Sequence record: NC_061451.1
Direction: 5' to 3' (one strand)
DNA: 64,000 nt
The notes beneath the pieces are model-generated. The model had not been told where the DNA came from. It did not search any database and was given only the letters and a program-made list of their open reading frames with translations. Made by a program: the position numbers and the translations under genes. Below, one piece after another: positions 9,558 to 60,041 of the stretch (its first letter is position 1; every line of letters starts with the position of its first letter).

Positions 9558-11234
9558 TTACAGACTCAGACTGGTGGAGGTGCTGCCTGATGGGTTGATG
9601 TTGAAACGATAGATCAGACGCTTAGTGGTACGCGTCGGGTCAAGAACAATATCCAGAATCAGGTCGCCATTAGCGATTGTCTGATTGGTGTTGTTCGTAT
9701 CGTCACACACAACTTGATAGCCACGAGAACCAGAGCTACCACCACGCAAGCCACGAGCCAGTTTGATCTCTTCGAGGAACTTCTCGACCATCGCTTTAAG
9801 CTGCTCACGCAACACGTTATCGTTGGGATCAAACAGGCCAGTACGCGCTGAACGAGAACACACTTCAAGCACATAGCCAACCATACGCTGAATCTGAATC
9901 TGCTGGAAGGCAGAACTCTGATTGTACAGCGTACTCGCTTCCCACACTGCAAAGCCACCGCCACTAATATCAGGCAGCTTGCGGATGTAGTTGACCTGCT
10001 CACGGGTCAGCGCATCACGGTCGTCCTGATCATACTTCTGAGTAAGAGCAAGAATGTTCAGTGGACTTGATGCAGTGATACCAGCAGGTGCGAACCAGCT
10101 ACCGCGATTGTTATCAGTGTACGCGAACACAGCACAGATCTGACCAACACAAGCCACCAGCAAGTAGCGACCAGTGTCTTCGTCGAAGATCTTAATGTCA
10201 GGTGTATACAGTGCCATATTGGTATCGTTCAGGTTCAGCGTCTGGCGGCGATAACGAATCGCTTTAGATACTGACTGCTCCGAAGTAGGAATACCACAGA
10301 TAACAAAGCAGTTGATGTGGGCAGCAGCGGCAGCTTTCATGCCACGATGCACGATGTAGTCCTGGATAGGGCTAAGCAGCAACGTAACGCGAATCTCTTC
10401 AGGGTCACCGAAGTAATCCTGATAAGCAGCAGCCAGCTGGTCGGAGGTAACAGTATCACCGTCAGCACCACCTTTGAAGAAGATGAAGTCTGAGCCGAAG
10501 AAACTGATATCCGTAGTGAAGTACGGGTTACGGATGAAACGATAGTTGGAGCTTTCGTTTTCCATAACTGTATCAAGGCGGTACTGACGATCAAACTCAT
10601 CGGAGTAATCGTACAGGCTTGCCTGATAGCTGTTTACAGGGTTAGACCCGTTGATGTAGTTCTCGTACTCGTCGATGTAGAACAGTTTGCTGTTATACTT
10701 CGTACGGTCGTCAAACGCAGACAGGCCTTTAGGCACGGCAGAACGAATCTGGAGCGCCATGTTGTTGTTCCAGTCACCTGGGTTTTCCAGACAGATGTAG
10801 CCGATGATGTTATCATTCAGCGGGTCAGTCGGCAGGAAGCCCAATTGAGCTGGGTCGTCAACGCCAACAACGTTACCGTCTGCGTCAGTGTATGGAGTTA
10901 CACGAACAACAGGCTGCAATGCAGTTGGGTCGTCAACAGTCAGCACACCAACAGCATACTTGGCGTTCTTAGTGATACGCACATAGGTAAGCTGGTTGGT
11001 TTGCTCTGAAACAGGAAGAGCCAGATACAGGCCTAGACCGTATTTTGGATCTTTGGAACCGAAAGTGTTTTTCAACACGTCTTTACTGCGAACAGAAACA
11101 CGCTGGTTAACAGGGCCACGAGAAGCCTGTCCAACGATGCCTACTACTGCTGTAGATAAAGACGTTGCACCAACGGAGAGATCCTTGACACCAGTGTAGA
11201 CACCAGCAGAGGGATGCGTTGAGTTAACGGGCAT
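9558..11234 (-). CDS. Contractile tail sheath protein
   Basis: 558 aa; N-terminal PGVY-like (SAGVYT) and GQASRGP; C-terminal WFAPAG, VNYIR, VCDDTNNT..TIA.G.L, typical of sheath C-terminal domains. Confidence 0.92.
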   Translation of the reverse strand: MPVNSTHPSAGVYTGVKDLSVGATSLSTAVVGIVGQASRGPVNQRVSVRSKDVLKNTFGSKDPKYGLGLYLALPVSEQTNQLTYVRITKNAKYAVGVLTVDDPTALQPVVRVTPYTDADGNVVGVDDPAQLGFLPTDPLNDNIIGYICLENPGDWNNNMALQIRSAVPKGLSAFDDRTKYNSKLFYIDEYENYINGSNPVNSYQASLYDYSDEFDRQYRLDTVMENESSNYRFIRNPYFTTDISFFGSDFIFFKGGADGDTVTSDQLAAAYQDYFGDPEEIRVTLLLSPIQDYIVHRGMKAAAAAHINCFVICGIPTSEQSVSKAIRYRRQTLNLNDTNMALYTPDIKIFDEDTGRYLLVACVGQICAVFAYTDNNRGSWFAPAGITASSPLNILALTQKYDQDDRDALTREQVNYIRKLPDISGGGFAVWEASTLYNQSSAFQQIQIQRMVGYVLEVCSRSARTGLFDPNDNVLREQLKAMVEKFLEEIKLARGLRGGSSGSRGYQVVCDDTNNTNQTIANGDLILDIVLDPTRTTKRLIYRFNINPSGSTSTSLSL

Positions 11235-11260
11235 GATTTATCTCCTTTTAAGACTGGTAG

Positions 11261-11268
11261 AAATTATC
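11261..11268 (-). promoter_or_regulatory. Putative late promoter (GATAATTT)
   Basis: 27 nt upstream of the sheath ATG; the same motif recurs before other structural genes. Confidence 0.55.
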
Positions 11269-11288
11269 GTCAATTAGGAGATAAATGC

Positions 11289-11314
11289 AAAAAGGGCAGC
11301 CGAAGCCACCCTTT
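11289..11314 (-). terminator. Intrinsic terminator with UUCG loop
   Basis: GGGTGGC-TTCG-GCTGCCC-TTTTT. Confidence 0.85.
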
Positions 11315-11317
11315 AGG

Positions 11318-12397
11318 TTAACATGCACAGCTTGCTTGTTCGTGATCGAATTTGACATTCAGATCAATGGTCGGATAAGCAGCCACAAACTCTTCCAGAC
11401 TTACGTTAAAGCCTGCGGCATTCGCATGACCATCACCGCCATGCAGACGCGCTGTATGTTTCGCAGAACCCGACTCAGCACCTGTTTTGAAATAACCACT
11501 ACGCACTGAAATATACACACGGTCTTTGTTCTCACCGCCGAGACGCGGCATAATAACTGTGTGGAAGCGATTGTGGTTTTCGTAGACGTAGGCAGCGAGT
11601 TGAGAACCGATACCACGACCAGCAGGAACAACAACGTGAGGTCCGTGACAGATCTCATTAGCTTCTGAGAAGAACGCGTGTTCATTCAAATGCTCTTGGA
11701 ACTTCTGCTCACGGTTTTCAGCACGTTTCTGGCCCAGAGTAATGATCTGCTCAATGTCACCGTGAACCAGAACATCGATAGCACGTTCAACAGTGCTTGG
11801 CGTGCTCACGTACAACACACCGTGCGGTTCCACCTTCTTAAACGTTTCCGGTGCGTGACCGTCGTAGAAGAAGAACGCACGTTTGTTCTGGCGCTGCCAC
11901 GTATCGTAATCAGACACCAACTGAGCCATGCGAATGACGTTGTTAGCGCTACGACCAGATAGCGACTGGAAGCGAGAGATATGATGGAAGTAGGCAAGCA
12001 GTGCACCACTACCACCAGCAGTGAAAGTAAGCTGTAGAGGCTGTGCACCAATGCGGCGACACTCTTCGGCATACAGTTCATGCGAACGGCAGTTGTGGTG
12101 GTCAAGCACAACAAAGTTGGCTTGATAGCGCTGCGTCAACACAGCCATCTGGCGTTCGGTCAATGAGAAGTCAACGATGATGATCTCTTTGTACAGAGCG
12201 TCAACGTCTTTGTCTGATTGTCGAACTCCTACCATGTCTTCGATAGCTGTACCATCAGCAAGAGCAATAGGTGCATTGTCTTTTGCGTAATGGGCAGGCA
12301 GGTAATGGATGTCGTCAGTCGAACGCGCTAGTGCGGTGATGGCTGCTGCGAAAGAACCATCCGCACATCCTTGATGATAAATCACAAGTGTAGTCAT
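11318..12397 (-). CDS. DHH/DHHA1-family phosphoesterase
   Basis: YH..CADG, IVDFS, LDHH, D.DTW and C-terminal GGDGHANAAGF. Confidence 0.9.
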   Translation of the reverse strand: MTTLVIYHQGCADGSFAAAITALARSTDDIHYLPAHYAKDNAPIALADGTAIEDMVGVRQSDKDVDALYKEIIIVDFSLTERQMAVLTQRYQANFVVLDHHNCRSHELYAEECRRIGAQPLQLTFTAGGSGALLAYFHHISRFQSLSGRSANNVIRMAQLVSDYDTWQRQNKRAFFFYDGHAPETFKKVEPHGVLYVSTPSTVERAIDVLVHGDIEQIITLGQKRAENREQKFQEHLNEHAFFSEANEICHGPHVVVPAGRGIGSQLAAYVYENHNRFHTVIMPRLGGENKDRVYISVRSGYFKTGAESGSAKHTARLHGGDGHANAAGFNVSLEEFVAAYPTIDLNVKFDHEQASCAC

Positions 12398-12400
12398 TGC

Positions 12401-13246
12401 TTATGCCCAATGAGTAAAGGAAGATTGTTCAGGCGGGTTGGTGATTTTGTTCACCATTTCCTGAAGGCCCGCAATTGTTGCGTCTAAGCCCATCTGGTAC
12501 TGCTTATGTGCAGTATCAAGACCGTACCGCATTGCCACACAGTACAACTGCCATTCGTCAGAGGACTGGAGCATGGCAATCTTTTTGCGGTAAGCATCAC
12601 GCTTCTGGCGAGCACGCAACAGACGCTGCATCAAATTAAGATTTGAGACAATTCCAGTCAGCTTCTCTAACAACTGCTCCAGACCTTCGAGGTCATCAAC
12701 CATCAACTTGAGTTTAGCATCAAGGAAGATTGCTTGACGCTCCGCGCGTTGATCTACGGAGAGATTGCGGCAGCGGTCTGGATGAGTCAGCTTAGCGATC
12801 TTGCGATAGACCTGCTTGCATTTGATTTGCAGTAGTGTCGCTTCGACTTCACCTGCATTCATACCATCTCTGGTAGCTTCGTCGTCATCTTCTACGACAA
12901 AGTTTTCTTCCATCTCTTTGCGCAGTTCTTCCGCAGCCAGCTTGTCTTCCAGATCATCTGATTCATCCAGATTGATTTGGTGCGCTTCAAGGATAGCAGT
13001 CAGACGGTTTACTTCCGCGATACGATCACGGTTAAACTCGTTCAGCTTGTTGATGCAGTTCGTGCAGCGGTCGCGGTCAGCAGTGAAGCGAAGTTCAAGA
13101 GCATCGGCTTCGGCCTTGACGTCTTCGAGAGTTTCGTCAGCTTCTGCCTGTTCGAATGCCTGTTGATCTTCGTACTCTGCCAGCTCAGTAGAACCGTGAA
13201 CAATCAGGCCGTGTTCAGCCACAACAACCAGTTCAGTTCCTGTCAT
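12401..13246 (-). CDS. Coiled-coil protein with a DnaJ-type J-domain
   Basis: YRKIAKLTHPDR (HPD motif); likely start ATG 13246 in an ATGA overlap with the upstream stop. Confidence 0.75.
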   Translation of the reverse strand: MTGTELVVVAEHGLIVHGSTELAEYEDQQAFEQAEADETLEDVKAEADALELRFTADRDRCTNCINKLNEFNRDRIAEVNRLTAILEAHQINLDESDDLEDKLAAEELRKEMEENFVVEDDDEATRDGMNAGEVEATLLQIKCKQVYRKIAKLTHPDRCRNLSVDQRAERQAIFLDAKLKLMVDDLEGLEQLLEKLTGIVSNLNLMQRLLRARQKRDAYRKKIAMLQSSDEWQLYCVAMRYGLDTAHKQYQMGLDATIAGLQEMVNKITNPPEQSSFTHWA

Positions 13247-13446: not shown

Positions 13447-14079
13447 TTAAAGAGATGAGGTCATTAAATCGAGAAGGTTTGAGACTACATGAGCAGGACC
13501 AATTGAGATACCCGCTTGCACGGGCAGATGAACACGACGAGTAAACAACTCCATCGGGTCTGGGCCACCGCCAGTCACTACGATACGAGGTATCTTTGGA
13601 AACATCTCAAGGATATCACGCAGTCTTTCAATTTTATAGCTGGTGCTGTCTATCGTCACGTTCGATATGATCAGCATTGACGGTCGCTTGCTTTTGAGTT
13701 GTTCATAGTCGAAGCGATCACCATACAGCGTAACCCAACGCGGCTTCAAGGCTGTTGTCTCTGAATCTTCAACAGCCGCATGGAAGATAGATAACGCCGC
13801 CATCTTCGCACGGTAGTCTGACGGGAAGCTACTGATAACCGTGATGCGTGGGTCAAGGCCAAACGGACTTTCAATCATCTTTGCAAGATGCGTCATCTGC
13901 TTGGTCTTTGAAAAAATCTTGCCTTTAAAGTAAGGCGACATTGGCTTAAAATCTTGTGAGGCTTCGACCACATCGAATGTCTCACGTTTGCCGAAAAGAA
14001 GCTGAGGGTCAACTCCCAGCGTCTGCATCTGCTTTGCTACTGCGGGTTCAAAGTCAAAAGTTAACACAATACCCTCCAT
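13447..14079 (-). CDS. Degenerate DnaC/IstB-like AAA+ protein (putative helicase loader)
   Basis: Strand/helix pattern MLIISNV..DST.YKIERLRDILE..PKIPRIVVT resembles DnaC; Walker A and B are not canonical. Confidence 0.45.
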   Translation of the reverse strand: MEGIVLTFDFEPAVAKQMQTLGVDPQLLFGKRETFDVVEASQDFKPMSPYFKGKIFSKTKQMTHLAKMIESPFGLDPRITVISSFPSDYRAKMAALSIFHAAVEDSETTALKPRWVTLYGDRFDYEQLKSKRPSMLIISNVTIDSTSYKIERLRDILEMFPKIPRIVVTGGGPDPMELFTRRVHLPVQAGISIGPAHVVSNLLDLMTSSL

Positions 14080-19149: not shown

Positions 19150-19411
19150 TTTTGTCCTCTAAAACAAATTGGAGAATACCCTCAATGTTTACAGCTTTCA
19201 GTTGCTGTCCTGTCTGCATCAACAGACCATTGAGCACGCCGAGTAAATCAGCGCTGTGGCAATTGGGTGCAATCTGATGAACGAAAATATCGTCAGGGAT
19301 ATCACCAGGATTAAGCTGCCAAGCAGTACGCAAGGCAGCTCCCATGAATGACGGTCGTTCCACCAGTTGCTTGTTCAGAAACGAACAAACATCTTCGGCG
19401 CTCAACATCAT
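19127..19411 (-). CDS. Hypothetical protein
   Basis: 94 aa; coupled to the polymerase stop. Confidence 0.7.
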   Translation of the reverse strand: MMLSAEDVCSFLNKQLVERPSFMGAALRTAWQLNPGDIPDDIFVHQIAPNCHSADLLGVLNGLLMQTGQQLKAVNIEGILQFVLEDKNEDLPTS

Positions 19412-22400
19412 TTCTTCGTAATCCTCTTGACTGCGTTCTTGAGGAGACTGCGGCTGATTTTGATTTTCTTCTTCGCATCACCAGCAGCTGCGGCAGCTTT
19501 CTTAGCCTTCTCTTCGGCTTCGTATGCTTCCCACTGCTTGATGTTCTTCGGAAGTTCTTTCTTCCACAGATCAATGTTCTTCTGATCTTTCTTGGTCAGA
19601 GGATTCACTTTGCCCATAGAACGAATCTTGATGCCATTAGCCCACAGTTGCTTCTGCATCCACGTGGACATGAGATGGTACTGGTCTTCCATGATGCTAT
19701 CAAGTTTCTTATCGACGTCGAGATCAGCTTCGCCCAACTCATCACGCTTCTGCTCAAGGCCAGCACGAATATGCTTCCTGAGTTGTTCGTAAGAGAAGTC
19801 CCAGCCTTCAACATCTTTCTCTGATGCACCGATCTCAAAGTCGATCTCAGGGACAGATGTGAACTCAAACCCTGGATGACGTTTCTGTACAAGTTCGACC
19901 ACTGCACTTGTCATGGCACGCTCAATCATATCAAGCGCGAGGAAAATCCAATCGTAGTGACAGTCAACGGTCAAGGAGTCATGCACCGATACGTTCATAT
20001 CAAAGTCAGGATAGACACCGTTTGCTTTCCAGTACTCAAACTTCATGCGGTCCAGAATACGAATCGCACTCATCATCAAGTCAGAACCAAAGCCCTGAAC
20101 GGGACTGTTTACCGCACGACGGTTACATGCTGCATGAACCATGTTCGCGTCTTTGTGCGACTCAGGTAACATGAAGCCCCACAGGTAACGACGACGACCA
20201 ACAGGCGATTCAACGAAGAAGTTCTGATGAGCAAAACTCTGAATCTTATCAAACCACTTCAAGCCAACAGGGAAGCGTTTAAGGAACTTGCCTTTGATCT
20301 CTTCGATCTCACCAACTTCACGTCCAGTTGACTTCGCAAGACCTTTGTTACCCTGCTGGTAGATCAGTCCGAAGATTACTGTCTTAACCGCGTTACGTAC
20401 GGACTTTGTTACGTCCATTACGTTTGGAATACCGAAGAAGTATGCGGCGTTAATCTTATGCACGTCACCTTCTGCTTCTACGCGGTGCTTAATCCACGGG
20501 TCAGGCACGGTACGATAACGATGACGCAACTCACGACCTTGTTCGAATACGTCTGCTACACCTTGGTCACCCGAGATGATTGACCAACCTCTAACTTCGT
20601 GCGCCGAGTAGTCGACCTTGATTAACAGGCGATTCTTACGCGCAATCAGAATACGTTTGATCAACTTACCCATCTCGCTACGACTCGGAACCTGTTGCAA
20701 GTTCGGGTCAGATGCAGATGTACGACCTGTCACAACTTTTAGATAGCTGTACGTTGGTCGAATCGAACGGTCATGCTTGAAGTCCTCACTCTCGCCCCAC
20801 AGCTTCAACAGGCTGTTAACGTAGGCGTTCTTGAGTTTGTACGCTTTACCTAACTTGGTATACAGCGAGACAAGAGGAAGTTCTTTGTACGCCTCTTGGA
20901 AGTCTTTATCGAGCTTCGCAGACTTCTTACCGTTATCACGGAGTTGCTCGCCTTCCTTGAGAGGTTTCAGGCGCATCACATCGATGAACAGGATTTGCTT
21001 ATGCTCCTGCTTCGACATATCGAACTTCGTGACCTCGACTTTGCCCATAAGACCCATCTTAGGAACATTGTCGTCTCTGCATATCACGGCGTTCGCTGCT
21101 TTAACTTCAGGACTCGACATGAACTCGCGTTCAACGTTTCGAATCTCTTCATTGATTGGACTGTTTGGCAAGTTGAGCTTAAACAGGTAATCAATGTCGG
21201 CACCAGCGCCTGTTGTCTCCAAGACACTGAACGCATGAATCTGGTCGGAGATTTGCTCACCCACCAGCGACTCATACTTCGTGTACTTGCTATCGACGCC
21301 ACGCTTAATCTGCGACAGATAGATACGGAACGGAACGATAACGTCAAGGCCCGCATACTCCTGTACAGCTTCGTCAAGGTCAGAGTCGGCGATTGTCGCA
21401 CGCATCTCTTTACCAAACGATACTTCGTGATAAACAGTCGTACCGTACTGCATTGCAAGGTTGGCTAAGTTGTAGTAACCTTGGCCAGTAACGGTCAACA
21501 GCGATTTCGCGTTTTCATCGTTACCAAACTCACCCGCTTGAATATCCCAGACGTCAGCGCAATAACTACGAATGCCAAAGTTGGAACGCATTACGTTCAG
21601 GTCAAACTTCGCATTCGTATAGATCTGAACCTTGTTGTCGTTGTCTTCGAAGTAGTCACGGAACATATCACTAATTCGACGCAACTCTTTACCGCTGAAC
21701 GGACTGTCTCTGTGATAGATTGGAATCACATAGGCTGTCTCACCGTCGCACGACAACTGCACGGTCTGAATCTTGTTTTTGATTCGATTCAGGTTCTCGG
21801 TTTCGGTATCGACTGCGACCAGCTTAGCACGCTTCATCTTTTTCAAGATCTTCTCAAGCTGCTTAACTTTGGTCACATACACCAGCTTCCAGTTGCGATC
21901 TTTACCGCAGGTCACTGGCTTGATCGCATAGCGCATACCCTTGTTGAGCCACGGCAACATCCAACGTGCCATGTAACCCAGAGTATACGACGATGCGTTT
22001 ATCACAGCAGGGTTCAGGACTGTGTGATAACTGACGTTCGGCAGATGAATGAAGCTATGCTTCTTGCCATCGTGCTTGAGCTTGGTGGGTATCTCAACTC
22101 CGTACCAGTGCTCATAGTGTTCTTTTGAATACTGAATCCTTTCATTGTTGAGCGCCTTGAACGGAGCTTTACCAAAAGTCAGAACGTAGTCTGGCTTGTA
22201 GTCAACAATCAGATCACGAATACGATCAGCGAATGCTTGGTCAGCATCTTCCTTGTACTGCTCAGACTTATCATACGTCTTGAACATGTTGTAGCTAACA
22301 ACGAGGAAGTTCCAATCGTCTAACGTGGTCTTTGTCGGGAACACGTCTTCGAGATACTGAATCTGATTCAAGAACAAATCGCCTTCTGTGCTGCTAAAGA

Positions 22401-22572
22401 TCTTACCATTACGCAGGTCTTCAGTTGGCATGTGATCGAGGACAAGTAGTGCTTTACCGCCTTTGGCGCTTTTACTAACGCCTTTTAAAATACGAACCCC
22501 GTCATAAGTCTGCACGTCGGCAAACTGTTCAGGTGGATCGAAGTCAAGAGCAACGTGCTTGATTTTCACCAT
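19408..22572 (-). CDS. polA: Family A DNA polymerase with 3'-5' exonuclease and N-terminal UDG-like domain
   Basis: ExoI VDTET, ExoII NAKFD, ExoIII YAGLD; TGRTSASDPNLQQVP; motif A DYSAHEVR, motif B R..VK..IFGLIY, motif C VHDS. Confidence 0.95.
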   Translation of the reverse strand: MVKIKHVALDFDPPEQFADVQTYDGVRILKGVSKSAKGGKALLVLDHMPTEDLRNGKIFSSTEGDLFLNQIQYLEDVFPTKTTLDDWNFLVVSYNMFKTYDKSEQYKEDADQAFADRIRDLIVDYKPDYVLTFGKAPFKALNNERIQYSKEHYEHWYGVEIPTKLKHDGKKHSFIHLPNVSYHTVLNPAVINASSYTLGYMARWMLPWLNKGMRYAIKPVTCGKDRNWKLVYVTKVKQLEKILKKMKRAKLVAVDTETENLNRIKNKIQTVQLSCDGETAYVIPIYHRDSPFSGKELRRISDMFRDYFEDNDNKVQIYTNAKFDLNVMRSNFGIRSYCADVWDIQAGEFGNDENAKSLLTVTGQGYYNLANLAMQYGTTVYHEVSFGKEMRATIADSDLDEAVQEYAGLDVIVPFRIYLSQIKRGVDSKYTKYESLVGEQISDQIHAFSVLETTGAGADIDYLFKLNLPNSPINEEIRNVEREFMSSPEVKAANAVICRDDNVPKMGLMGKVEVTKFDMSKQEHKQILFIDVMRLKPLKEGEQLRDNGKKSAKLDKDFQEAYKELPLVSLYTKLGKAYKLKNAYVNSLLKLWGESEDFKHDRSIRPTYSYLKVVTGRTSASDPNLQQVPSRSEMGKLIKRILIARKNRLLIKVDYSAHEVRGWSIISGDQGVADVFEQGRELRHRYRTVPDPWIKHRVEAEGDVHKINAAYFFGIPNVMDVTKSVRNAVKTVIFGLIYQQGNKGLAKSTGREVGEIEEIKGKFLKRFPVGLKWFDKIQSFAHQNFFVESPVGRRRYLWGFMLPESHKDANMVHAACNRRAVNSPVQGFGSDLMMSAIRILDRMKFEYWKANGVYPDFDMNVSVHDSLTVDCHYDWIFLALDMIERAMTSAVVELVQKRHPGFEFTSVPEIDFEIGASEKDVEGWDFSYEQLRKHIRAGLEQKRDELGEADLDVDKKLDSIMEDQYHLMSTWMQKQLWANGIKIRSMGKVNPLTKKDQKNIDLWKKELPKNIKQWEAYEAEEKAKKAAAAAGDAKKKIKISRSLLKNAVKRITKK

Positions 22573-22612: not shown

Positions 22613-22620
22613 ATTTACAG
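22613..22620 (-). promoter_or_regulatory. Putative middle promoter (CTGTAAAT class)
   Basis: Intergenic, 41 nt upstream of the polymerase ATG; recurs before other DNA-metabolism genes. Confidence 0.55.
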
Positions 22621-46384: not shown

Positions 46385-47098
46385 TCAAACTCCCTGATTA
46401 GCAACGTAGGTGTCGGTGATGTTCGCAGTCTTCTCAACGTTACCGCGAATGTAACCTATCTCAAACACCTGCACATTATGTTTGACCACAGCTTCACCGT
46501 CAGTCTCACACGCACCGCTATGAATGTCCAAGAAAGCCTGACACAATCGGTCAGTAACAGGCTTAGCTAAGATCTTCATCAGCGTATGCTTCTGGACAGC
46601 AGTCATCTTGATCGGCAGTGCATCAATCTCACGCTCGATAGACTTGCGCCCGCCACCGTACACCCAACGACAAATAGTGTTAGTGATTGGCTTCTGGTGC
46701 GTCTTGCTCGGCAGCTTATAGATGAATGTCATCAGGCTATAGAACAAGCTGCCATCGACTGCGCGTTTCTTCAAGTCATCAAGATAAGCACCGACAGGTG
46801 ACAGCTTACCTTTCTGAGGAACTAATTGGTCGAGCTTGAGATCAACATCAAGCCCGTATCGGTTAAGCACCTCAGAGTGACCGAACACAAAGACGATGTG
46901 CTCTGGCAGATCACGAATCGCAATCGCGTTGCGACTGTAATCACGCGAGCCTACAATGAAAATGTATTTGCGGTATTTCTTCGCTGGATTTAAGAACCCA
47001 TTGGACGGCACAAAGGTGACGCGCTGTGCTTCACCTTTCTTTTTAAGCCACCCCATCACCTGCTCTGGGCTCTGTCGCGTTACTGCAATTACTGGCAT
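46385..47098 (-). CDS. Hypothetical protein
   Basis: 237 aa; coupled to the sbcC stop. Confidence 0.75.
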   Translation of the reverse strand: MPVIAVTRQSPEQVMGWLKKKGEAQRVTFVPSNGFLNPAKKYRKYIFIVGSRDYSRNAIAIRDLPEHIVFVFGHSEVLNRYGLDVDLKLDQLVPQKGKLSPVGAYLDDLKKRAVDGSLFYSLMTFIYKLPSKTHQKPITNTICRWVYGGGRKSIEREIDALPIKMTAVQKHTLMKILAKPVTDRLCQAFLDIHSGACETDGEAVVKHNVQVFEIGYIRGNVEKTANITDTYVANQGV

Positions 47099-49419
47099 CA
47101 GATCACCTTACGACTAAGAGACGACACACCAGACTTCTTAGTGACCGTCCACTGATTGTTAGAGAAGTGCTCAACATCGTTTGGAGTTATCCAGTAGATG
47201 TTAGGAATGATCTGCTTGAGAATCGGCAGGAAGTTGTTGACGATGTGACTGCTCACAGCAGGACTGCAACTGTTGTCCGGCTCATCAAGAACGATGAAGT
47301 TGGTGCGACGGTTAGCCGGAATGAACGGCATGATCGCTACAGCAAACAGCAATCTAAAACAGTTCGTCTCTGCACCACTCATGATACCAATGTCCGTAGT
47401 CTTCTTAGAGATCATACGAGTCACGGTAGCACCAACACCCTGCTTGGTCGTGAACAAATCAAAGTGCATCGGTTCAGGGAACACAAGCGAGGAGTATTCG
47501 TTCAGCTTCTTCTCAATCTGTTTCAAACGACCTTCGACGGCTTTCAGTTTCAGCGCGTTGTTCGAGTATGCTTTGTATAGCACCTCAAACACTTTGCGCT
47601 TATCGATCAGAGGCTGCAAGTCCGCGAGCTTGCCACGAAGTTCCTTGAGAGTCTCCTCGTAGTGCTCATGCTCTTGGATGCGCATCTTGATCTTCTGGGC
47701 CTTGTGCTCTTTCTTATCAATGTCGTCTGTCAGCTTCTCAACTTCCTGAGTAACCTTCTTGAACTCGGCATCAAGCAGATAGAAGTCGTTGGAAGGTTTG
47801 CCTACAGCTTTGAGCGCACCAAGCAATTCACGCAACGTCTCAAGGTCTTCGATGCGACCCTCAATGACTTTACGTTTCTTCTTCGGCTTCTCAATCTTCT
47901 TCGGCTTCTTCAATGAATCGAGGCGAGTGTTGAGCTTGTCATACTTCTTGGCAGACTCAAACTGCTCTTCCATTTTATCCAACAGCTTACCGACCTTCTT
48001 CATACGAGCTTGAAGTTCTTCACGGTCGAGCTTCGGCTTCTTGACCTTGTTGTCCTTGAGAGCCTGGAGTTCAGCAGACAACGCATAGTAGTCCAGAGCT
48101 TCGATGCAGTCATCAACAGTAGCCCGTGCACGGGTTGCCGCTTTAGCCATCGACTTCATATCAACATCCTGAGAACACGTAGGGCACTTTGTACCTTCAA
48201 CATGTTCGGACAGATGCTCAAATGCTTTTACGATTGCTCGCGCTTCTGCTCGCGCATCACGAGCTTCTTCCTCAGTTCGTTTAGGACTTTTGAGCTTAGA
48301 TAGCCGCTTTTCCAATTGTTTGACTGAGGACTGCCATGCTCGGTATTCTTCTTGCTGGCCATCAATCTCCTCCAGGAGCTGTTCGATTTCTTCCTCTTCG
48401 GCCACCAGCTTGCGATGCTTCTTGCTTGCGGCTTTGCTATCAAAGTCCGAGCAATCGCCGAGTTCTTCAAGTTGCTTGTGCAGCTTTTTCAGATCTGCCT
48501 TATACTCTTCCAGCAGTTCCTCATACTCGGCGTACATGTCGTGCAGTGCAAGGTCGGAGCGGAGTTTCTTTAGCTCCTGTTTGGGATCATCTGACTCAAT
48601 GCCAAGCGTGTCGAGTTGATGTTTAATCTTCTCATACTTCTTGGCAGTGTTACGTTCGGTACTTACTTCAACCAGACGCTCGGACAAGTTGTTACGCTTG
48701 GCCTTGAGCTTGTCGATCATGCTGATAATACTTTTCAGCGTGTTCTTTTCTTCTGCATGGATGTCCAGCGCGTTTTGTTTACGCTGCATAACGTCCAGCA
48801 TATCGGCCAGGCCTTTAGATTCTGTCTCGGCATCTTTTGCCAGATCAAGTTTCTTCTTGAGCGCTGCGCGAATGTTATCGAACACATCGAGGTTGAACAA
48901 GCTGGTCAGGTACTTGAGACGATCAGCAGGAGCAGCACGCTGGAACGGATGAGAGATCTGCGACTGGATGTAGCAGTAGCTGTAGAACTCATCTTTAGAC
49001 AGAGGCCAGTGCTTCTGTACCCAAGAGCGTGCAACGTCCTGACGACCAACCTTCTGGTCTTCGCCGTTGTAGAATACCTGATACTTGGTAGACGACTGCA
49101 CGACACGAACGATGCCACCAAGCGGTGACTTCCATGACAGGTCAATCGAGCTACCCTTGCCGAGCATGTTACCCTTGTCTTTCTTTTTCATCGCAAGGGG
49201 ATCAGCTTCATACAGCAAGGTAGGTATTGCAGCGAACAGCATACTCTTACCTACGCCGTTCGTGTTTTCCTTAACGTCTGGACTATCGAGGTTCTTCCCG
49301 CAGATTGTTGCGAAGCCCTCTTTGTCAAGGCCATCAATGTCGAGTTCCTTGTATACGCCAACGTCGCGCAAGTGAATCTCTTTCAGGCCAATACCGTGTT
49401 GCTGTTTTACTTTCGCCAT
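47098..49419 (-). CDS. sbcC: SbcC/Rad50-like ABC-ATPase with coiled coils and zinc hook
   Basis: NGVGKS Walker A, YIQSQ Q-loop, CPTC hook, MSGAE signature, IVLDEP Walker B. Confidence 0.9.
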   Translation of the reverse strand: MAKVKQQHGIGLKEIHLRDVGVYKELDIDGLDKEGFATICGKNLDSPDVKENTNGVGKSMLFAAIPTLLYEADPLAMKKKDKGNMLGKGSSIDLSWKSPLGGIVRVVQSSTKYQVFYNGEDQKVGRQDVARSWVQKHWPLSKDEFYSYCYIQSQISHPFQRAAPADRLKYLTSLFNLDVFDNIRAALKKKLDLAKDAETESKGLADMLDVMQRKQNALDIHAEEKNTLKSIISMIDKLKAKRNNLSERLVEVSTERNTAKKYEKIKHQLDTLGIESDDPKQELKKLRSDLALHDMYAEYEELLEEYKADLKKLHKQLEELGDCSDFDSKAASKKHRKLVAEEEEIEQLLEEIDGQQEEYRAWQSSVKQLEKRLSKLKSPKRTEEEARDARAEARAIVKAFEHLSEHVEGTKCPTCSQDVDMKSMAKAATRARATVDDCIEALDYYALSAELQALKDNKVKKPKLDREELQARMKKVGKLLDKMEEQFESAKKYDKLNTRLDSLKKPKKIEKPKKKRKVIEGRIEDLETLRELLGALKAVGKPSNDFYLLDAEFKKVTQEVEKLTDDIDKKEHKAQKIKMRIQEHEHYEETLKELRGKLADLQPLIDKRKVFEVLYKAYSNNALKLKAVEGRLKQIEKKLNEYSSLVFPEPMHFDLFTTKQGVGATVTRMISKKTTDIGIMSGAETNCFRLLFAVAIMPFIPANRRTNFIVLDEPDNSCSPAVSSHIVNNFLPILKQIIPNIYWITPNDVEHFSNNQWTVTKKSGVSSLSRKVI

Positions 49420-53340: not shown

Positions 53341-53419
53341 AACATCTCCTGAATATTAAACCTCAACGTTCTTGAATTATGTTTACAGATTGCTTCGGTC
53401 CGTCCTTGCGATTTAAAGT

Positions 53420-53785
53420 CAGAATAGTCTTAAACTCCAATAAGCTCTTGTTAGAACGTATTGGAGTCCACCCTGTCAGATGACGGTCATTCAGGGCTTT
53501 CTCCCCGCACACTTATATAGCGCCGTGCGGCAGGCTGCGCTCGCGAGGTCTTATGTTTTCCACAGCAGGTGGTCCAGGAGGTAGCGTCCTCTGAAAAGAT
53601 ACCCGCCGCACAACAGCCTCGCTATCGGCCAATCAGCGATACGCGGTGTTACGCTGAATCGACCTAAGTGACTCTGGCCGAGTCGTGTACAAAAAAGAGT
53701 TCGGTCCCAATCAAAAAGATGGCGAAAAAGAAAGGGACCGAACAAAAGGCACTCAGCGCAAACTCCTTATGCACTGTTTTTGTAC
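53420..53785 (-). ncRNA. Candidate structured non-coding RNA (unknown family)
   Basis: No credible ORF; at least nine predicted helices; ACTAATTT motif at 53792-53799; ends in a 9-bp hairpin followed by TTT. Confidence 0.45.
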
Positions 53786-53825
53786 TTGGGAAAATTAGTG
53801 ACATTCCCTTTTATTCAGAAAATTC

Positions 53826-56992: not shown

Positions 56993-58009
56993 TTACTTGT
57001 ACTGTCCCGTCACAACAAAGACGAGAGAATCAGGTTTCTTCCGTCCGTTAACAATGAGATACTTGAACGGACGTGTGGGTTCAAGCTGGCCTTCGACCAC
57101 TTGAGTGATTGCAATATCTTTGACTTCACCAAATGTCAGAGCGTTGTCCATCTGATCAAAGGAGAAGGCATTTGAAAGCGAAACAGAGTTGTGAGACTCT
57201 ACCGTAATACCTTCAGGCTTCTTGGATGCACTACGTTTCGAGTCCAGCCACTTCTGCCAATCGAACATCGCATGGTTCATTGAACGAGAGACGAGCGAAC
57301 GGGGCACTTTCCCTTTCAACGATTTGCGAAACTCGGTCACAACTTCCGACACAGGAGGACCAGCATTAACGCGACGACGATCTTTCAGAATCGTGCGCAT
57401 CTTATCAGACCAGTAGTTGTAGGCATCAACTCGAATCTGAATGTATTCTTCAAGGCGCTGAGCCTGTTCGAGGGTACACTCAATTTCGAACGTCACCTGA
57501 CTTCCACGTTCTGTGCCGTTGTGTTTGATAGCAGCTTTCTCTGCTTTCGTTTCGCTGATCAGTTTTTCTTTTACACACGCCGCCCATGCATATGCAAATG
57601 TGAGACGCATGTCAGGATAACGGTTCATCACCTGCACGCGTGTTTGAAGCAACAACGGAATGGCATAGCCCAGATGACAACGACGATCAATAAAGGCAGA
57701 ACGGAGTTCACCAATATCTTTGTCCAGCTCGTTGAGGTCATTGAACAAATAACCCGAGTCACGGTACGACTGAGAAATGTGGTTACCTTCACGAAGTACA
57801 TCGTCGATGGTCAAACCTTTTTCAACGATGCTGTTGTATGCTTCTTCCAAAGTAACATCAGGCCAAGTGCGATAACCTGTTTGGTCTAAAGTAAGATGAC
57901 GGAAGCAATACAATTCATACATGTGCAAAAAGTCCGCGAATGGCAGACTTTTGGGATATACGAATTTTTTAATCACCTTCTTCGGTTTGATAACTGCTTT
58001 CTTGATCAT
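56993..58009 (-). CDS. Protein with unknown N-terminal domain fused to a TnpB-like REC/WED region lacking RuvC
   Basis: Residues ~171-338 follow the TnpB N-terminal pattern (F.I..T.EQ...L.......YNYW...; see findings). Confidence 0.55.
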   Translation of the reverse strand: MIKKAVIKPKKVIKKFVYPKSLPFADFLHMYELYCFRHLTLDQTGYRTWPDVTLEEAYNSIVEKGLTIDDVLREGNHISQSYRDSGYLFNDLNELDKDIGELRSAFIDRRCHLGYAIPLLLQTRVQVMNRYPDMRLTFAYAWAACVKEKLISETKAEKAAIKHNGTERGSQVTFEIECTLEQAQRLEEYIQIRVDAYNYWSDKMRTILKDRRRVNAGPPVSEVVTEFRKSLKGKVPRSLVSRSMNHAMFDWQKWLDSKRSASKKPEGITVESHNSVSLSNAFSFDQMDNALTFGEVKDIAITQVVEGQLEPTRPFKYLIVNGRKKPDSLVFVVTGQYK

Positions 58010-59699
58010 TGCGTTCTCGCTGGAGTTTGGCGGCTATTTTGAGATATTCTCTATTTACAGTTTCTGGGTCTGTAGCGAACCCTCTCTTAGTGAACAGGTT
58101 ACGCTTGACCTTACCCATGCTATAGCCGTTATCCCAGAGTTTCATGAATATCAGACAGTTTAACGTCGGGTCCATGAATGGTTTTTCTTTCAGAGCAACG
58201 TCACCAGAATACTTGGTCAGCAGGATAGCGCCGTCGAACTCTGCGCTACACCACTCGGACTCAGCTAAGACCTTGAGCAGGTTGTAATTCTCCATACCCT
58301 GAATCAAATGACTAAGGATGGTATACTGGTCACGCTTATACCGAGCAACGGGAACTCGATGCGAACACCCCGAAGCATTTTTGAAGAAGTGATCTGTCGT
58401 GCGAGAATAAGAGGCGTTCTTAATTCTCAGGCACAACTCCTCAACGACAAGAGATGCAGGCTCGAACATAGCCTTCCACTTACCCCAGATTCGGGTGGCA
58501 TAGTTCTTGATTTCTTCCTCTGTCATTTTATACTTCTTGCCTACGTTTTGTACCTTAGTGTCAGATACAAGTTGACGGAAAATATCCGTCATCATAGCGC
58601 CGGGATCTTCTTTCTCCGAAGAGGTATCAAACGTCTGTTTGAAATACCTCTGATTACTCCACCCGCTATATATGCCGCCATAGTTCAAAGTCTTGGACGT
58701 GCCCCTCGTGATCTTTAGCGTCTTGGCCACGTAGTCATGATCAAGATGTTCAAGCATCGGACATTCGAGGCCGTACTCCGACATGAGGTCTAGCAGCAAA
58801 ACAATCTGGGCGTTCGGCATATCAAAGTTGCGACCATAAGAGTGATCGAAACATAGCAGCTTAACAATCTTCGGCAGTGCAGCCGCGGTACCGAATAGAC
58901 GACTACCAACATGGTTCATCGAATACTCGTCGTAGAACTCCACTAGCCTATCATTCGGGTTATCGTTGACAAGACGCAACCCAAAGCGGCAAATCTTCTT
59001 CAGGAAAGAATCAAGGCGCATGTGCAAACCGTAACGTCGGTTAGTACGAGCGTTCTCCTTAATGTCCAAGAAGCGGTCCAAATAAAATCTATAGGGACGC
59101 TGATTAGCCTGAGCACGATTGATAAGTTCAATCACTTCCCTGTTCTTGCTTTTGTGGTAGATAAAGTTATGAGGGCGTCTAAACGGCTTCGCCTTCACTT
59201 CTTTTTCAAAAGCGGCAGCAACCAAGTCATCCTGTGACTGAAAAATCGCCCTGCGACGATTTGGCTTCAACAAATTGTACATGGGCTCCTCAAGAGCACA
59301 TAAATCTGCTAAAGTTTGGGCCAGAACGGTATTGAGCGAATACTTACGGGCGATCCCCTTAATGTAATCAAAGCGGGTTTTGTTCACCTTACGGTCCAAC
59401 CAGGCACGAACACCGTCATTTTTCTGACGAACCATCGCATAACGCATCTTTTCATGAGCCCGCATGTAACTATAGGTCACTACGGTTTCATTATAGACGT
59501 TTCGTTTTTCCATCATGCGGGATTTATCGATCAAATGGATGAAAAACCACGCCAAACTTTCGTAAAACTTATCCGATTTAGCGTTCTTCGGCTTGGGGCA
59601 CGAATAAATCATGTCCCAGAAGAACTGATGAAAGGATTTAGGTACCGCGCCCACCCATCCTGGGGGCACAGCTTTCTTCCCGTACACGGGTTTGGCCAT
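57969..59699 (-). CDS. Divergent family-A-fold polymerase (TV-Pol-like), possible primase or replication initiator
   Basis: GSRLF, FDMPNAQ (motif A Asp), SKTLNYGGIYSG (motif B), L.H.IQG.E, EFDG (motif C Asp); wHTH-like N-terminal FDYIKGIARKYSL. Confidence 0.6.
   Translation of the reverse strand: MAKPVYGKKAVPPGWVGAVPKSFHQFFWDMIYSCPKPKNAKSDKFYESLAWFFIHLIDKSRMMEKRNVYNETVVTYSYMRAHEKMRYAMVRQKNDGVRAWLDRKVNKTRFDYIKGIARKYSLNTVLAQTLADLCALEEPMYNLLKPNRRRAIFQSQDDLVAAAFEKEVKAKPFRRPHNFIYHKSKNREVIELINRAQANQRPYRFYLDRFLDIKENARTNRRYGLHMRLDSFLKKICRFGLRLVNDNPNDRLVEFYDEYSMNHVGSRLFGTAAALPKIVKLLCFDHSYGRNFDMPNAQIVLLLDLMSEYGLECPMLEHLDHDYVAKTLKITRGTSKTLNYGGIYSGWSNQRYFKQTFDTSSEKEDPGAMMTDIFRQLVSDTKVQNVGKKYKMTEEEIKNYATRIWGKWKAMFEPASLVVEELCLRIKNASYSRTTDHFFKNASGCSHRVPVARYKRDQYTILSHLIQGMENYNLLKVLAESEWCSAEFDGAILLTKYSGDVALKEKPFMDPTLNCLIFMKLWDNGYSMGKVKRNLFTKRGFATDPETVNREYLKIAAKLQRERNDQESSYQTEEGD
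58053..58060 (-). promoter_or_regulatory. Putative middle promoter (CTGTAAAT)
   Basis: 44 nt upstream of ATG 58009, inside the end of the upstream gene. Confidence 0.5.
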
Positions 59700-60041
59700 C
59701 TTGGAACCTCAAAAAGCTCGTTCTCTTGGCTGATCTTTACAGAATCCTGCTTGTTCTACGTCAGAGACTCAAATTCTATCAGATAGTTGATTAGGTTAGG
59801 TAGATTAGGTATGGCATAGCATCTTATGCAGCATGAGCGCACTATATTCACACGGAATACAGCCTTCTCTCCCGAATCCCTAGCGCCTAGACGCATATCC
59901 CTCACCCATAGACATACCGTAGGGGTCGAAAACGCGAAAACCGCTTTAGCATGGTTATTTGGTGCCAATTCAGCGGAATTGATTTCTAAGCGCACTTTGA
60001 GACTATTCTTATTGCCGTAGGTCGATTCTGTAGGAAAGTGG

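Follow-up and report, generated by a model that had tools for sequence, protein, structure and literature searches.

TnpB is the ancestor of all Cas12 enzymes, and to our knowledge its domesticated descendants (Cas12, Cas12k, Cas12m, TldR, sigma-factor-associated forms, and Fanzor) have all kept a bilobed protein together with a guide RNA. Here we describe gp219 (MPK74_gp219), a phage gene in a stretch of 64,000 nucleotides from sequence record NC_061451.1, which is referred to as the window in the following. The C-terminal half of its product is very probably homologous to the REC lobe of TnpB, which appears to have been domesticated by discarding the nuclease part (RuvC plus TNB) precisely where the domains meet and by acquiring a helical N-terminal domain. 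A sequence-only reading of the window had already proposed a domesticated TnpB fragment at this position, and the analyses below examine this proposal and the genomic context of the gene.

The closest described system is ISDra2 TnpB, in which residues 1-12 and 117-176 make up a WED barrel of seven strands, the REC helices (residues 13-116) interrupt this barrel between strands beta-1 and beta-2 to complete the REC lobe, and the RuvC domain begins at residue 185 (PMC10097598). In this protein, the duplex of the transposon-associated motif (TAM) is held in a cleft that is formed by WED and REC alone, whereas the omegaRNA scaffold is held by WED and RuvC, and the channel for the heteroduplex is formed with RuvC (PMC10097598). 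The exaptations that were described in the 2023 census of TnpB and Cas12 comprise sigma-factor, flagellin/TldR, DppD, and RHH/MazE associations as well as an active TnpB that is paired with PrimPol; in each case, the protein is full-length with an intact or mutated RuvC, and a 3' guide region is usually present (PMC10691335). Neither a derivative consisting of only the REC lobe nor a pairing of TnpB with PolA was found in the literature that we searched.

Over the 5 kb around gp219, the window matches the genome of Erwinia phage pEa_SNUABM_7, a Snuvirus of 265,635 bp (NC_061451), with 100% identity, and window positions correspond to record positions minus 124,000. This phage is one of the 'hairy' jumbo myoviruses of Erwinia and Dickeya, which also include Yoloswag, Y3, AD1, and the JA phages (PMC6143709). 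The gene gp219 occupies positions 56993..58009 on the minus strand, starts with ATG, and encodes 338 amino acids, with a helical N-terminal domain followed by a WED/REC lobe of the TnpB type; its product is annotated as a hypothetical protein. These coordinates, the position of residue 171 at nucleotide 57499, and the sequence strings quoted in the sequence-only reading were all reproduced.

Homologues that cover nearly the whole length of gp219 (residues ~21-338) are found in Snuvirus, in Rivsvirus (pEa_SNUABM_5, 33% identity), in Yoloswagvirus (28%), and in the Dickeya Salmondvirus phages JA11, JA13, JA29, and JA33 (27-29%), so that the full-length protein occurs in four phage genera with identities down to 27%. 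The family is very small and restricted to this clade, as only seven clusters were recovered when all 1.84 billion cluster representatives were searched exhaustively with its profile. There was no direct match of gp219 in Pfam (to E = 1), PHROGs, NCBIfam, or PADLOC, and phmmer as well as the family profile produced nothing but chance matches among the PDB sequences, namely EzrA (E 0.014) and CusC. In comparison with a metagenomic relative of 82% identity, the ratio of non-synonymous to synonymous substitution rates (dN/dS) was 0.106 for the entire gene, with a value of 0.175 in the N-terminal part (residues 1-170) and of 0.048 in the C-terminal part (residues 171-338). The gene is intact and under strong purifying selection.

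The relationship to TnpB was first examined at the level of the predicted structure. An AlphaFold2 model of gp219, generated without templates from an alignment of 11 sequences, has a mean predicted local distance difference test score (pLDDT) of 80, with blocks of 81-92 in the C-terminal half. In this half, a strand (residues 171-177) is followed by helices at 180-207, 221-230, and 237-256 and by six strands between residues 275 and 337, which is the topology of the TnpB REC lobe, an OB-type WED barrel with the REC insertion after beta-1. Strand beta-1 (57479..57499, minus strand) with its motif F-E-I-E-C aligns with the first TnpB strand, and E175, E177, and C178 are invariant in the family alignment. 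The REC-like helical insertion (residues 180-256; 57242..57472, minus strand) has a first helix with a PF12323-like Q...YN motif (Q182, Y197, and N198). Strands beta-2 to beta-7 (residues 275-337; 56999..57187, minus strand) form, together with beta-1, a set of seven, as in the TnpB WED barrel. The C-terminal half is basic, with an isoelectric point of 9.0-9.8 in nearly all members of the family.

When the model was compared with the PDB using Foldseek, a check that the sequence-only reading had suggested, ranks 1-31 consisted exclusively of TnpB, Cas12f, Cas12k, Cas12n, Cas12m, Fanzor2, and TranC structures. The top match was 8h1j_A (E 8e-4, probability 1.00), and the target-normalised TM-score was 0.64 against 8ex9_A, a chain of 166 residues that shows WED and REC alone. 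A search of the predicted viral structures in BFVD gave the same picture: apart from the gp219 family itself, the named matches in ranks 4-26 were all TnpB- or Fanzor-type transposases or endonucleases of giant viruses and phages. The weight of these results lies in the uniformity of the match lists, as the E-values themselves are modest.

Sequence comparisons agree with the structural result, and here the link goes via the family profile and a distant family member. With hhalign, the gp219 family profile (18 sequences) aligned over 152 columns with a TnpB profile of 10 sequences (E. coli InsQ and nine phage TnpBs) at an E-value of 5.3e-5 and a probability of 67%, and residues 171-336 of gp219 were co-linear with residues 6-164 of InsQ. 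When InsQ was used as the single TnpB, the probability was 0.06%, so the link appeared only with the 10-sequence profile. In the alignment, Q182 and N198 are opposite Q17 and N33 of TnpB, respectively, two positions that are invariant in the TnpB profile. The spacing between Q and YN that the sequence-only reading had given for TnpB therefore holds. Neither gp219 nor its close relatives had a Pfam match at E<=1 to PF12323 (HTH_OrfB_IS605), but the distant members do show similarity to this family: P0019 reached the cutoff with 21.1 bits against 21, and for P0030, PF12323 was the best Pfam match (E 0.018). P0019, a protein of 533 amino acids and the most distant member, is tied to the gp219 family at E 2e-6 (hhalign probability 95.8%) and also matches Cas12f and Cas12-U of PADLOC (E 5e-4 to 4e-3), guided_TnpB of NCBIfam (E 2.7e-4), and the 10-sequence TnpB profile (E 1.2e-4). 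All of these TnpB and Cas12 matches are located on the equivalent N-terminal stretch. The likeness to the N-terminal half of TnpB, originally recognized by eye, has thus been confirmed by the AlphaFold2 fold, by both structure searches, and by hhalign.

The gp219 protein ends at the boundary between WED and RuvC. The alignment, which stops at InsQ residue 164, ends about 20 residues short of the RuvC-I aspartate (D183 in InsQ, invariant in the profile), as the sequence-only reading had recognized when it placed the stop codon where RuvC-I would start. RuvC (PF01385) had no match in gp219, and the TNB zinc finger (PF07282) was absent from gp219 and from the window, whereas the InsQ control was positive at E 2.4e-23. 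A remnant of RuvC or TNB was not found in any of the six frames of the window with ten TnpB tblastn queries (best E 0.04) or a TnpB profile (E 2.3), although plain TnpB hidden Markov models and tblastn over the whole window also miss gp219 itself. The two genes after gp219, encoding 51 and 170 amino acids, are retained in relatives that lack gp219. As previously proposed, no TnpA and no insertion sequence (IS) ends were found in the window, and there was no transposase annotation in the genome parts outside 50-124 kb that were examined. The gene is present as a single copy at one syntenic site in four phage genera. It is a clean and old truncation rather than a decaying insertion.

In comparison to TnpB (ISDra2 TnpB, PDB 8h1j/8exa/8ex9, and E. 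coli InsQ), gp219 shares the REC lobe, the Q...N spacing in a first helix that resembles PF12323, and co-linearity over TnpB residues ~6-164. Unlike TnpB, it lacks the RuvC domain, the TNB zinc finger, and the C-terminal domain as well as TnpA and IS ends, no omegaRNA locus was found, and it resides at a fixed phage locus, carries an extra N-terminal domain of 170 residues, and is only ~10% identical in sequence. It resembles TldR, Cas12k, Cas12m, and the sigma-factor-associated dCas12f in being an immobilised TnpB derivative without cleavage that is linked to a partner gene and that would target DNA on behalf of a different activity. However, these proteins have the full bilobed fold with a mutated RuvC and an adjacent guide RNA, whereas gp219 has dispensed with the nuclease lobe altogether, and a search for a guide was negative. 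As RuvC, TNB, and an IS are missing and no guide was detected, we regard gp219 as a new architectural variant that is derived from the TnpB superfamily and not as a member of it.

The N-terminal domain (residues 1-167; 57509..58009, minus strand) is all helical in the AlphaFold2 model, with helices between residues 24 and 162, and has no match in the Pfam, PHROG, NCBIfam, or PADLOC libraries, which bears out the earlier impression that these ~170 residues resemble nothing known. Its I-P-L-L and Y-x-W motifs are conserved and common to the distant members P0019 and P0030, and the hhalign alignment of the family with P0019 includes residues 99-160 of this domain. We infer that it is a candidate docking domain. 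The sequence-only reading had considered a targeting module that delivers an unknown effector. The N-terminal domain probably is not this effector, but a candidate effector exists in the co-occurring neighbor gp220, which had been overlooked.

The gene gp220 (MPK74_gp220; 57969..59699, minus strand) encodes 576 amino acids, belongs to phrog_30690 (function unknown), and overlaps the start of gp219 with its last 41 nucleotides. The AlphaFold2 model of its product (pLDDT 77, predicted template modelling score 0.74) has the palm, fingers, and thumb of the right-hand fold of Pol I-type enzymes. In the Foldseek comparison with the PDB, each of the structures in ranks 1-40 was either a family-A DNA polymerase, among them Taq and Aquifex Pol I, Pol theta, Pol nu, Bst, T7 DNAP, and DpoZ, or a single-subunit RNA polymerase of mitochondria, with a best E-value of 3.6e-3 and probabilities of up to 1.0. 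Candidate catalytic motifs were mapped to residues by eye, without superposition, and invariant residues were taken from an alignment that reaches down to 18% identity. Candidate motif A (residues 289-298, G-x-N-x-D-M...Q; 58806..58835, minus strand) comprises a strand (290-293) that ends in the invariant D293 and is followed by a helix (297-308). Candidate motif B, the O-helix (residues 332-346; 58662..58706, minus strand), has the invariant K336 and the near-invariant Y340 on a helix, and its K-x-x-N-Y-G-x-x-Y resembles the K-x-x-N-F-G-x-x-Y of PolA. Candidate motif C (residues 485-491, S-x-E-x-D-G-A; 58227..58247, minus strand), again assigned by eye, lies on a beta-hairpin (483-487 and 490-493) with the invariant D489 at the turn.

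Seven members of the gp220 family had no match at E<=5 to Pfam families including PF00476 (DNA_pol_A) and PF00940 (RNA_pol), hhalign found nothing between gp220 and the phage's own PolA, gp179, and the sole matches of the gp220 profile among PDB sequences were to motif B of Pol gamma with a non-significant E-value of 0.16. The dN/dS of gp220 is 0.11. Judged from the predicted fold and its geometry, with motifs that were assigned by eye, gp220 is probably a strongly diverged, unannotated polymerase of the family-A type that lacks an exonuclease domain. It would then be a second polymerase, as gp179 (19408..22572, minus strand) is the ordinary replicase, with Pfam matches to DNA_pol_A (E 9e-53) and the 3'-5' exonuclease DNA_pol_A_exo1 (E 3.8e-15). 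Despite these canonical domains, gp179 is labelled 'hypothetical protein' in RefSeq, whereas the 206-residue gp170 (13447-14067) is labelled 'DNA polymerase' yet has no Pfam match.

The two genes are genetically linked. The order of a polymerase-like gene followed by a gene for a WED/REC protein is found in pEa_SNUABM_7, _14, _21, _35, _28, and _5, in Yoloswag, and in JA11 and JA29, and hence spans Snuvirus, Rivsvirus, Yoloswagvirus, and Salmondvirus. It is kept even in two deep metagenomic lineages (L014 and L031), although the genes are separated there by two small ones and the N-terminus of the WED/REC protein is extended. In the phage collection, homologues of gp220 with at least 36% identity occur in exactly 16 Erwinia phage records, and these are the same 16 that contain gp219 homologues. 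The polymerase-like gene is a core gene of the clade, and its accessory genes are of two types. In the five closest relatives, whose flanks are 98.5% identical to the window, gp219 is absent and an alternative module is in its place. The exchanged region comprises window positions ~56996-60040 versus 9995-13051 of the pEa_SNUABM_34 sequence (L002), where the replacement is an Alexandravirus-type module that encodes a polymerase-like protein of 534 amino acids (23% identity) and small unrelated proteins. The two genes gp219 and gp220 thus behave as an exchangeable cassette. We asked whether the short accessory proteins encoded in these other cassettes (172 and 174 amino acids in pEa_SNUABM_34, 208 amino acids in L014) could be cryptic halves of gp219, but BLASTP and hhalign detected no relation.

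Both genes are preceded by a promoter-like box. The motif CTGTAAAT occurs nine times in the window versus 2.25 expected copies, a fourfold enrichment, with eight copies on the minus strand (14094, 22613, 24095, 39642, 41017, 49861, 53027, and 58053) and one on the plus strand (62813). Seven copies lie 27-44 nucleotides upstream of start codons, several of them just past terminator-like hairpins, and precede gp170, the replicase gene gp179 (box 22613-22620), gp193, gp207, the clamp loader gene gp211, gp219, and gp225. The box of gp219 (58053..58060, minus strand) is located 44 nucleotides upstream of the ATG, within the coding sequence of gp220. It is kept in nine relatives at 43-52 nucleotides before the start, and at this distance the form ACTGTAAATA(G/T) is present in pEa_SNUABM_21, _35, and _5, L030, Yoloswag, JA11, JA29, and L012. 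In Erwinia phages, it resides inside the gp220 coding sequence, whereas it is intergenic in Dickeya phages. The motif that the sequence-only reading had assigned to the gene is therefore real, enriched, and conserved. The gp220 gene has a box of its own, CTGTAAAG (59735..59742, minus strand), 35 nucleotides upstream of its ATG, and this is the only element of the 342-nucleotide upstream gap that is common to all relatives.

The CTGTAAAT box is probably a promoter element that is common to replication genes, and it is perhaps served by the phage sigma factor gp244, which is encoded in the genome. No RNA polymerase is annotated in the same genome parts that were examined for transposases, and related phages have been described as dependent on phage sigma factors (PMC7412058). 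We also considered the box as the sequence that gp219 might read, and rejected this, as the box is kept in phages without gp219. In Erwinia phages, gp220 ends in a conserved tail (T-V-N-x-E-Y-L-K-I), and this conservation is due at least in part to the promoter-like box of gp219 that the tail encodes, so that a regulatory element here constrains the coding sequence.

Some Pol I-type enzymes work with separate specificity or accessory factors, such as TFB2M/Mtf1 in the case of mitochondrial RNA polymerase, gp2 in the case of RNA polymerase II of phage N4, and the accessory subunit of Pol gamma. We know of none of these factors that has a WED/REC fold. By analogy only, gp220 resembles the enzymes in its predicted Pol I-type palm and fingers and its candidate motifs A, B, and C, but it differs from them in being invisible to the Pfam models DNA_pol_A and RNA_pol and in lacking an exonuclease or promoter-binding domain. 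The partners in TldR-type exaptations are a sigma factor, a transposase, or a flagellin locus, whereas the partner of gp219 is polymerase-like. Closest in this respect are the PrimPol-TnpB operons of Deinococcus, in which a TnpB-family protein is likewise genetically linked to a nucleic-acid polymerase; however, they combine a full-length, predicted active TnpB with a PrimPol of the archaeo-eukaryotic primase type, and not a REC lobe with a Pol I-type fold (PMC10691335).

The reading that we favor is that gp219 could be a guide-free, DNA-recognising and duplex-opening partner of gp220, and for this whole chain of steps we estimate a probability of roughly 0.4. The basic cleft between WED and REC, which in TnpB is the part that reads the TAM and starts unwinding, would attach to a duplex junction or to a short motif in the DNA, and gp219 would open or mark the bound site without a guide RNA. 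Its N-terminal domain would dock to gp220, with the consequence that synthesis would start at defined places, and gp220 would act as a minimal catalytic subunit that needs a separate specificity or melting factor, in analogy to the Pol I-type enzymes mentioned above. As both genes share their promoter-like box with replication genes, among them those for the replicase and the clamp loader, the pair probably functions in phage DNA metabolism. Its task might be priming, specialised repair, or the transcription of a few sites, and the product might be DNA or RNA. A more specific version, which we offer only tentatively, is that of a site-directed polymerase, in which the TnpB-derived lobe recognises a short motif in the DNA (use of a guide RNA being less likely), wedges the duplex open, and loads the minimal Pol I-type enzyme, with the result that synthesis begins at chosen sites.

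Several observations weigh against this partnership. The hhalign probability of the TnpB link is under 90%, and the direction of evolution from TnpB to gp219 is argued from abundance. The assignment of gp220 as a polymerase combines a modest Foldseek E-value with motifs found by eye, and Pfam, the sequence profile search of the PDB, and hhalign do not confirm it. A conserved promoter-like box of its own allows gp219 to be expressed separately from gp220. Moreover, pEa_SNUABM_7 and pEa_SNUABM_21 differ at 16 nucleotides in gp219 and at 447 nucleotides in gp220, with a second breakpoint at the gp220/gp219 junction, and the two genes therefore recombine independently at shallow depth. In Alexandravirus (AD1 and pEa_SNUABM_1), a polymerase of 21-23% identity is followed by three small unrelated proteins, and the same holds for five Snuvirus isolates (pEa_SNUABM_34, _45, _46, _25, and _13); in both groups, no WED/REC protein was detectable. 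The WED/REC partner is thus replaceable. With respect to AD1, we would like to note that its polymerase-like gene (L032 3468-4520) is annotated with 350 amino acids, compared to 538 in pEa_SNUABM_1, and is preceded by a gap of ~970 nucleotides, which may be due to a wrong start call or to a truncation.

Some of these points would fit better to the view that gp219 is a stand-alone, sequence-specific DNA-binding regulator of phage or host transcription or replication, which neighbors gp220 only because both belong to a shared module. The separate box, the independent recombination, and the polymerase-like genes without gp219 in Alexandravirus and the pEa_SNUABM_34 group all point in this direction, and a TAM cleft that is complete in WED and REC, together with the basic C-terminal half, could serve a regulator equally well. 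On the other hand, this view leaves the conserved N-terminal domain without a role, and the gp219 family is always found downstream of the polymerase-like gene, in six lineages of which two are very distant, and never elsewhere. We regard a stand-alone regulator as the main, though less probable, alternative to the partnership. That gp219 might be an RNA-guided DNA-binding module like TldR or Cas12k, which would deliver the N-terminal domain or gp220, was one of the options in the sequence-only reading and is suggested by the fact that the characterised relatives of the fold are all RNA-guided and that the TnpB WED domain supplies part of the omegaRNA-binding surface (PMC10097598). However, the omegaRNA scaffold and the heteroduplex channel need surfaces of the absent RuvC domain (PMC10097598), and every exapted TnpB in the 2023 census retains the RuvC fold (PMC10691335). 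As the TAM cleft consists of WED and REC and the RNA surfaces require RuvC, gp219 keeps a complete reader of a duplex motif and half of each RNA-related surface. There is also little room for a guide: the following open reading frame begins 12 nucleotides past the gp219 stop codon, which leaves no space for a 3' guide locus, although an RNA that overlaps coding sequence would go undetected. The 342-nucleotide gap upstream of gp220 was examined as a guide-RNA locus and rejected, as its conservation is limited to the short promoter-like box. No Rfam family passed its gathering threshold in the window, a relaxed scan (E <= 1) of 53.0-60.2 kb yielded no meaningful match either, and a search for tRNA and tmRNA genes found none.

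The RNA at 53.4-53.8 kb, which the sequence-only reading had named as a possible partner of gp219, does lie in a structured and conserved non-coding element only 3 kb away. This element (53341-53825, minus strand) fills the 485 nucleotides that separate the HAD-like gene gp213 from the gp212/clamp-loader genes, has a folding z-score of -5.4 in comparison to shuffled sequences, and consists of a terminator hairpin, a GC-rich core of ~300 nucleotides, and a CTGTAAAC box. The core hairpin is invariant in four divergent phages, and the adjoining stem shows compensatory changes. However, the element is 99.6% identical in pEa_SNUABM_34, a phage without gp219, and thus does not travel with the gene, for which reason it was rejected as a partner. 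It is a candidate phage non-coding RNA in its own right, without an Rfam family and independent of the gp219 cassette. RNA-guided targeting by gp219 is therefore unsupported, and we consider it improbable. The other proposal of the sequence-only reading, a decoy in which the RuvC-less lobe soaks up guide RNAs of TnpB or Cas12 of the host, could appeal to the fold as such and to the variation of the cassette between near-identical phages, which is often seen with anti-defence loci. Nothing, however, points to RNA binding by a protein that has lost one half of the surface for it, PADLOC gave no match and nothing else resembled an anti-defence signal, and the gene has remained at one locus across phages of two host genera, beside a polymerase-like gene and behind the box of replication genes. 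Erwinia amylovora has type I CRISPR systems and is not known to carry type V, which also counts against a decoy. We found no evidence for such a function and consider it very unlikely.

Two further alternatives concern the origin of gp219. The fold could be an old phage DNA-binding module that merely resembles, or is even ancestral to, the REC lobe of TnpB, since the identity in structural alignments is just ~8-14%, hhalign gives a probability of 67%, none of the TnpB models recognizes gp219 directly, and the OB-type barrel of WED is a common fold. Against such an independent origin, the whole composite topology is matched co-linearly from end to end, the best matches in two structure libraries are exclusively of the TnpB superfamily, the Q and N positions of PF12323 are shared, and four libraries return the TnpB/Cas12 N-terminus as the best match of P0019. 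Furthermore, TnpB is present in 630 phage records, compared to the 7 clusters of the gp219 family among 1.84 billion representatives. The probability of an independent origin is thus low. A decaying IS200/IS605 remnant, finally, would be in line with the common occurrence of TnpB genes in phages and with the absence of gp219 from the five closest relatives, which the sequence-only reading had named as a sign of decay. The absence is real, but it is not due to decay, as another module has replaced the gene. The dN/dS of ~0.11, with ~0.05 in the TnpB-like half, indicates a functional gene, as do its full length in four genera and its fixed syntenic position, and there are no traces of RuvC, TNB, or TnpA. 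Selection and conservation have already refuted this explanation, and we assign practically no weight to it.

Apart from these loci, two large open reading frames had no Pfam match, namely gp205 (773 amino acids; window 47098-49419, minus strand) and gp330 (1003 amino acids; NC_061451 248992-252003).

If our interpretation of gp219 as a domesticated REC lobe is true, no earlier TnpB derivative would have done away with the nuclease lobe in its entirety. A REC lobe that is tied to a polymerase would show that this lobe can work as a free-standing module, which would be a new route of exaptation, and a site-directed polymerase would represent the first natural coupling of a TnpB/Cas12 targeting lobe to a polymerase. 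The ~170-residue lobe would then be a natural and possibly guide-free reader of a DNA motif, which would be of interest for the design of compact DNA-targeting tools. For the phages themselves, the predicted fold of gp220 suggests that a core gene in a whole clade of jumbo phages that infect plant pathogens encodes an unannotated, extremely divergent second polymerase of the Pol I type.

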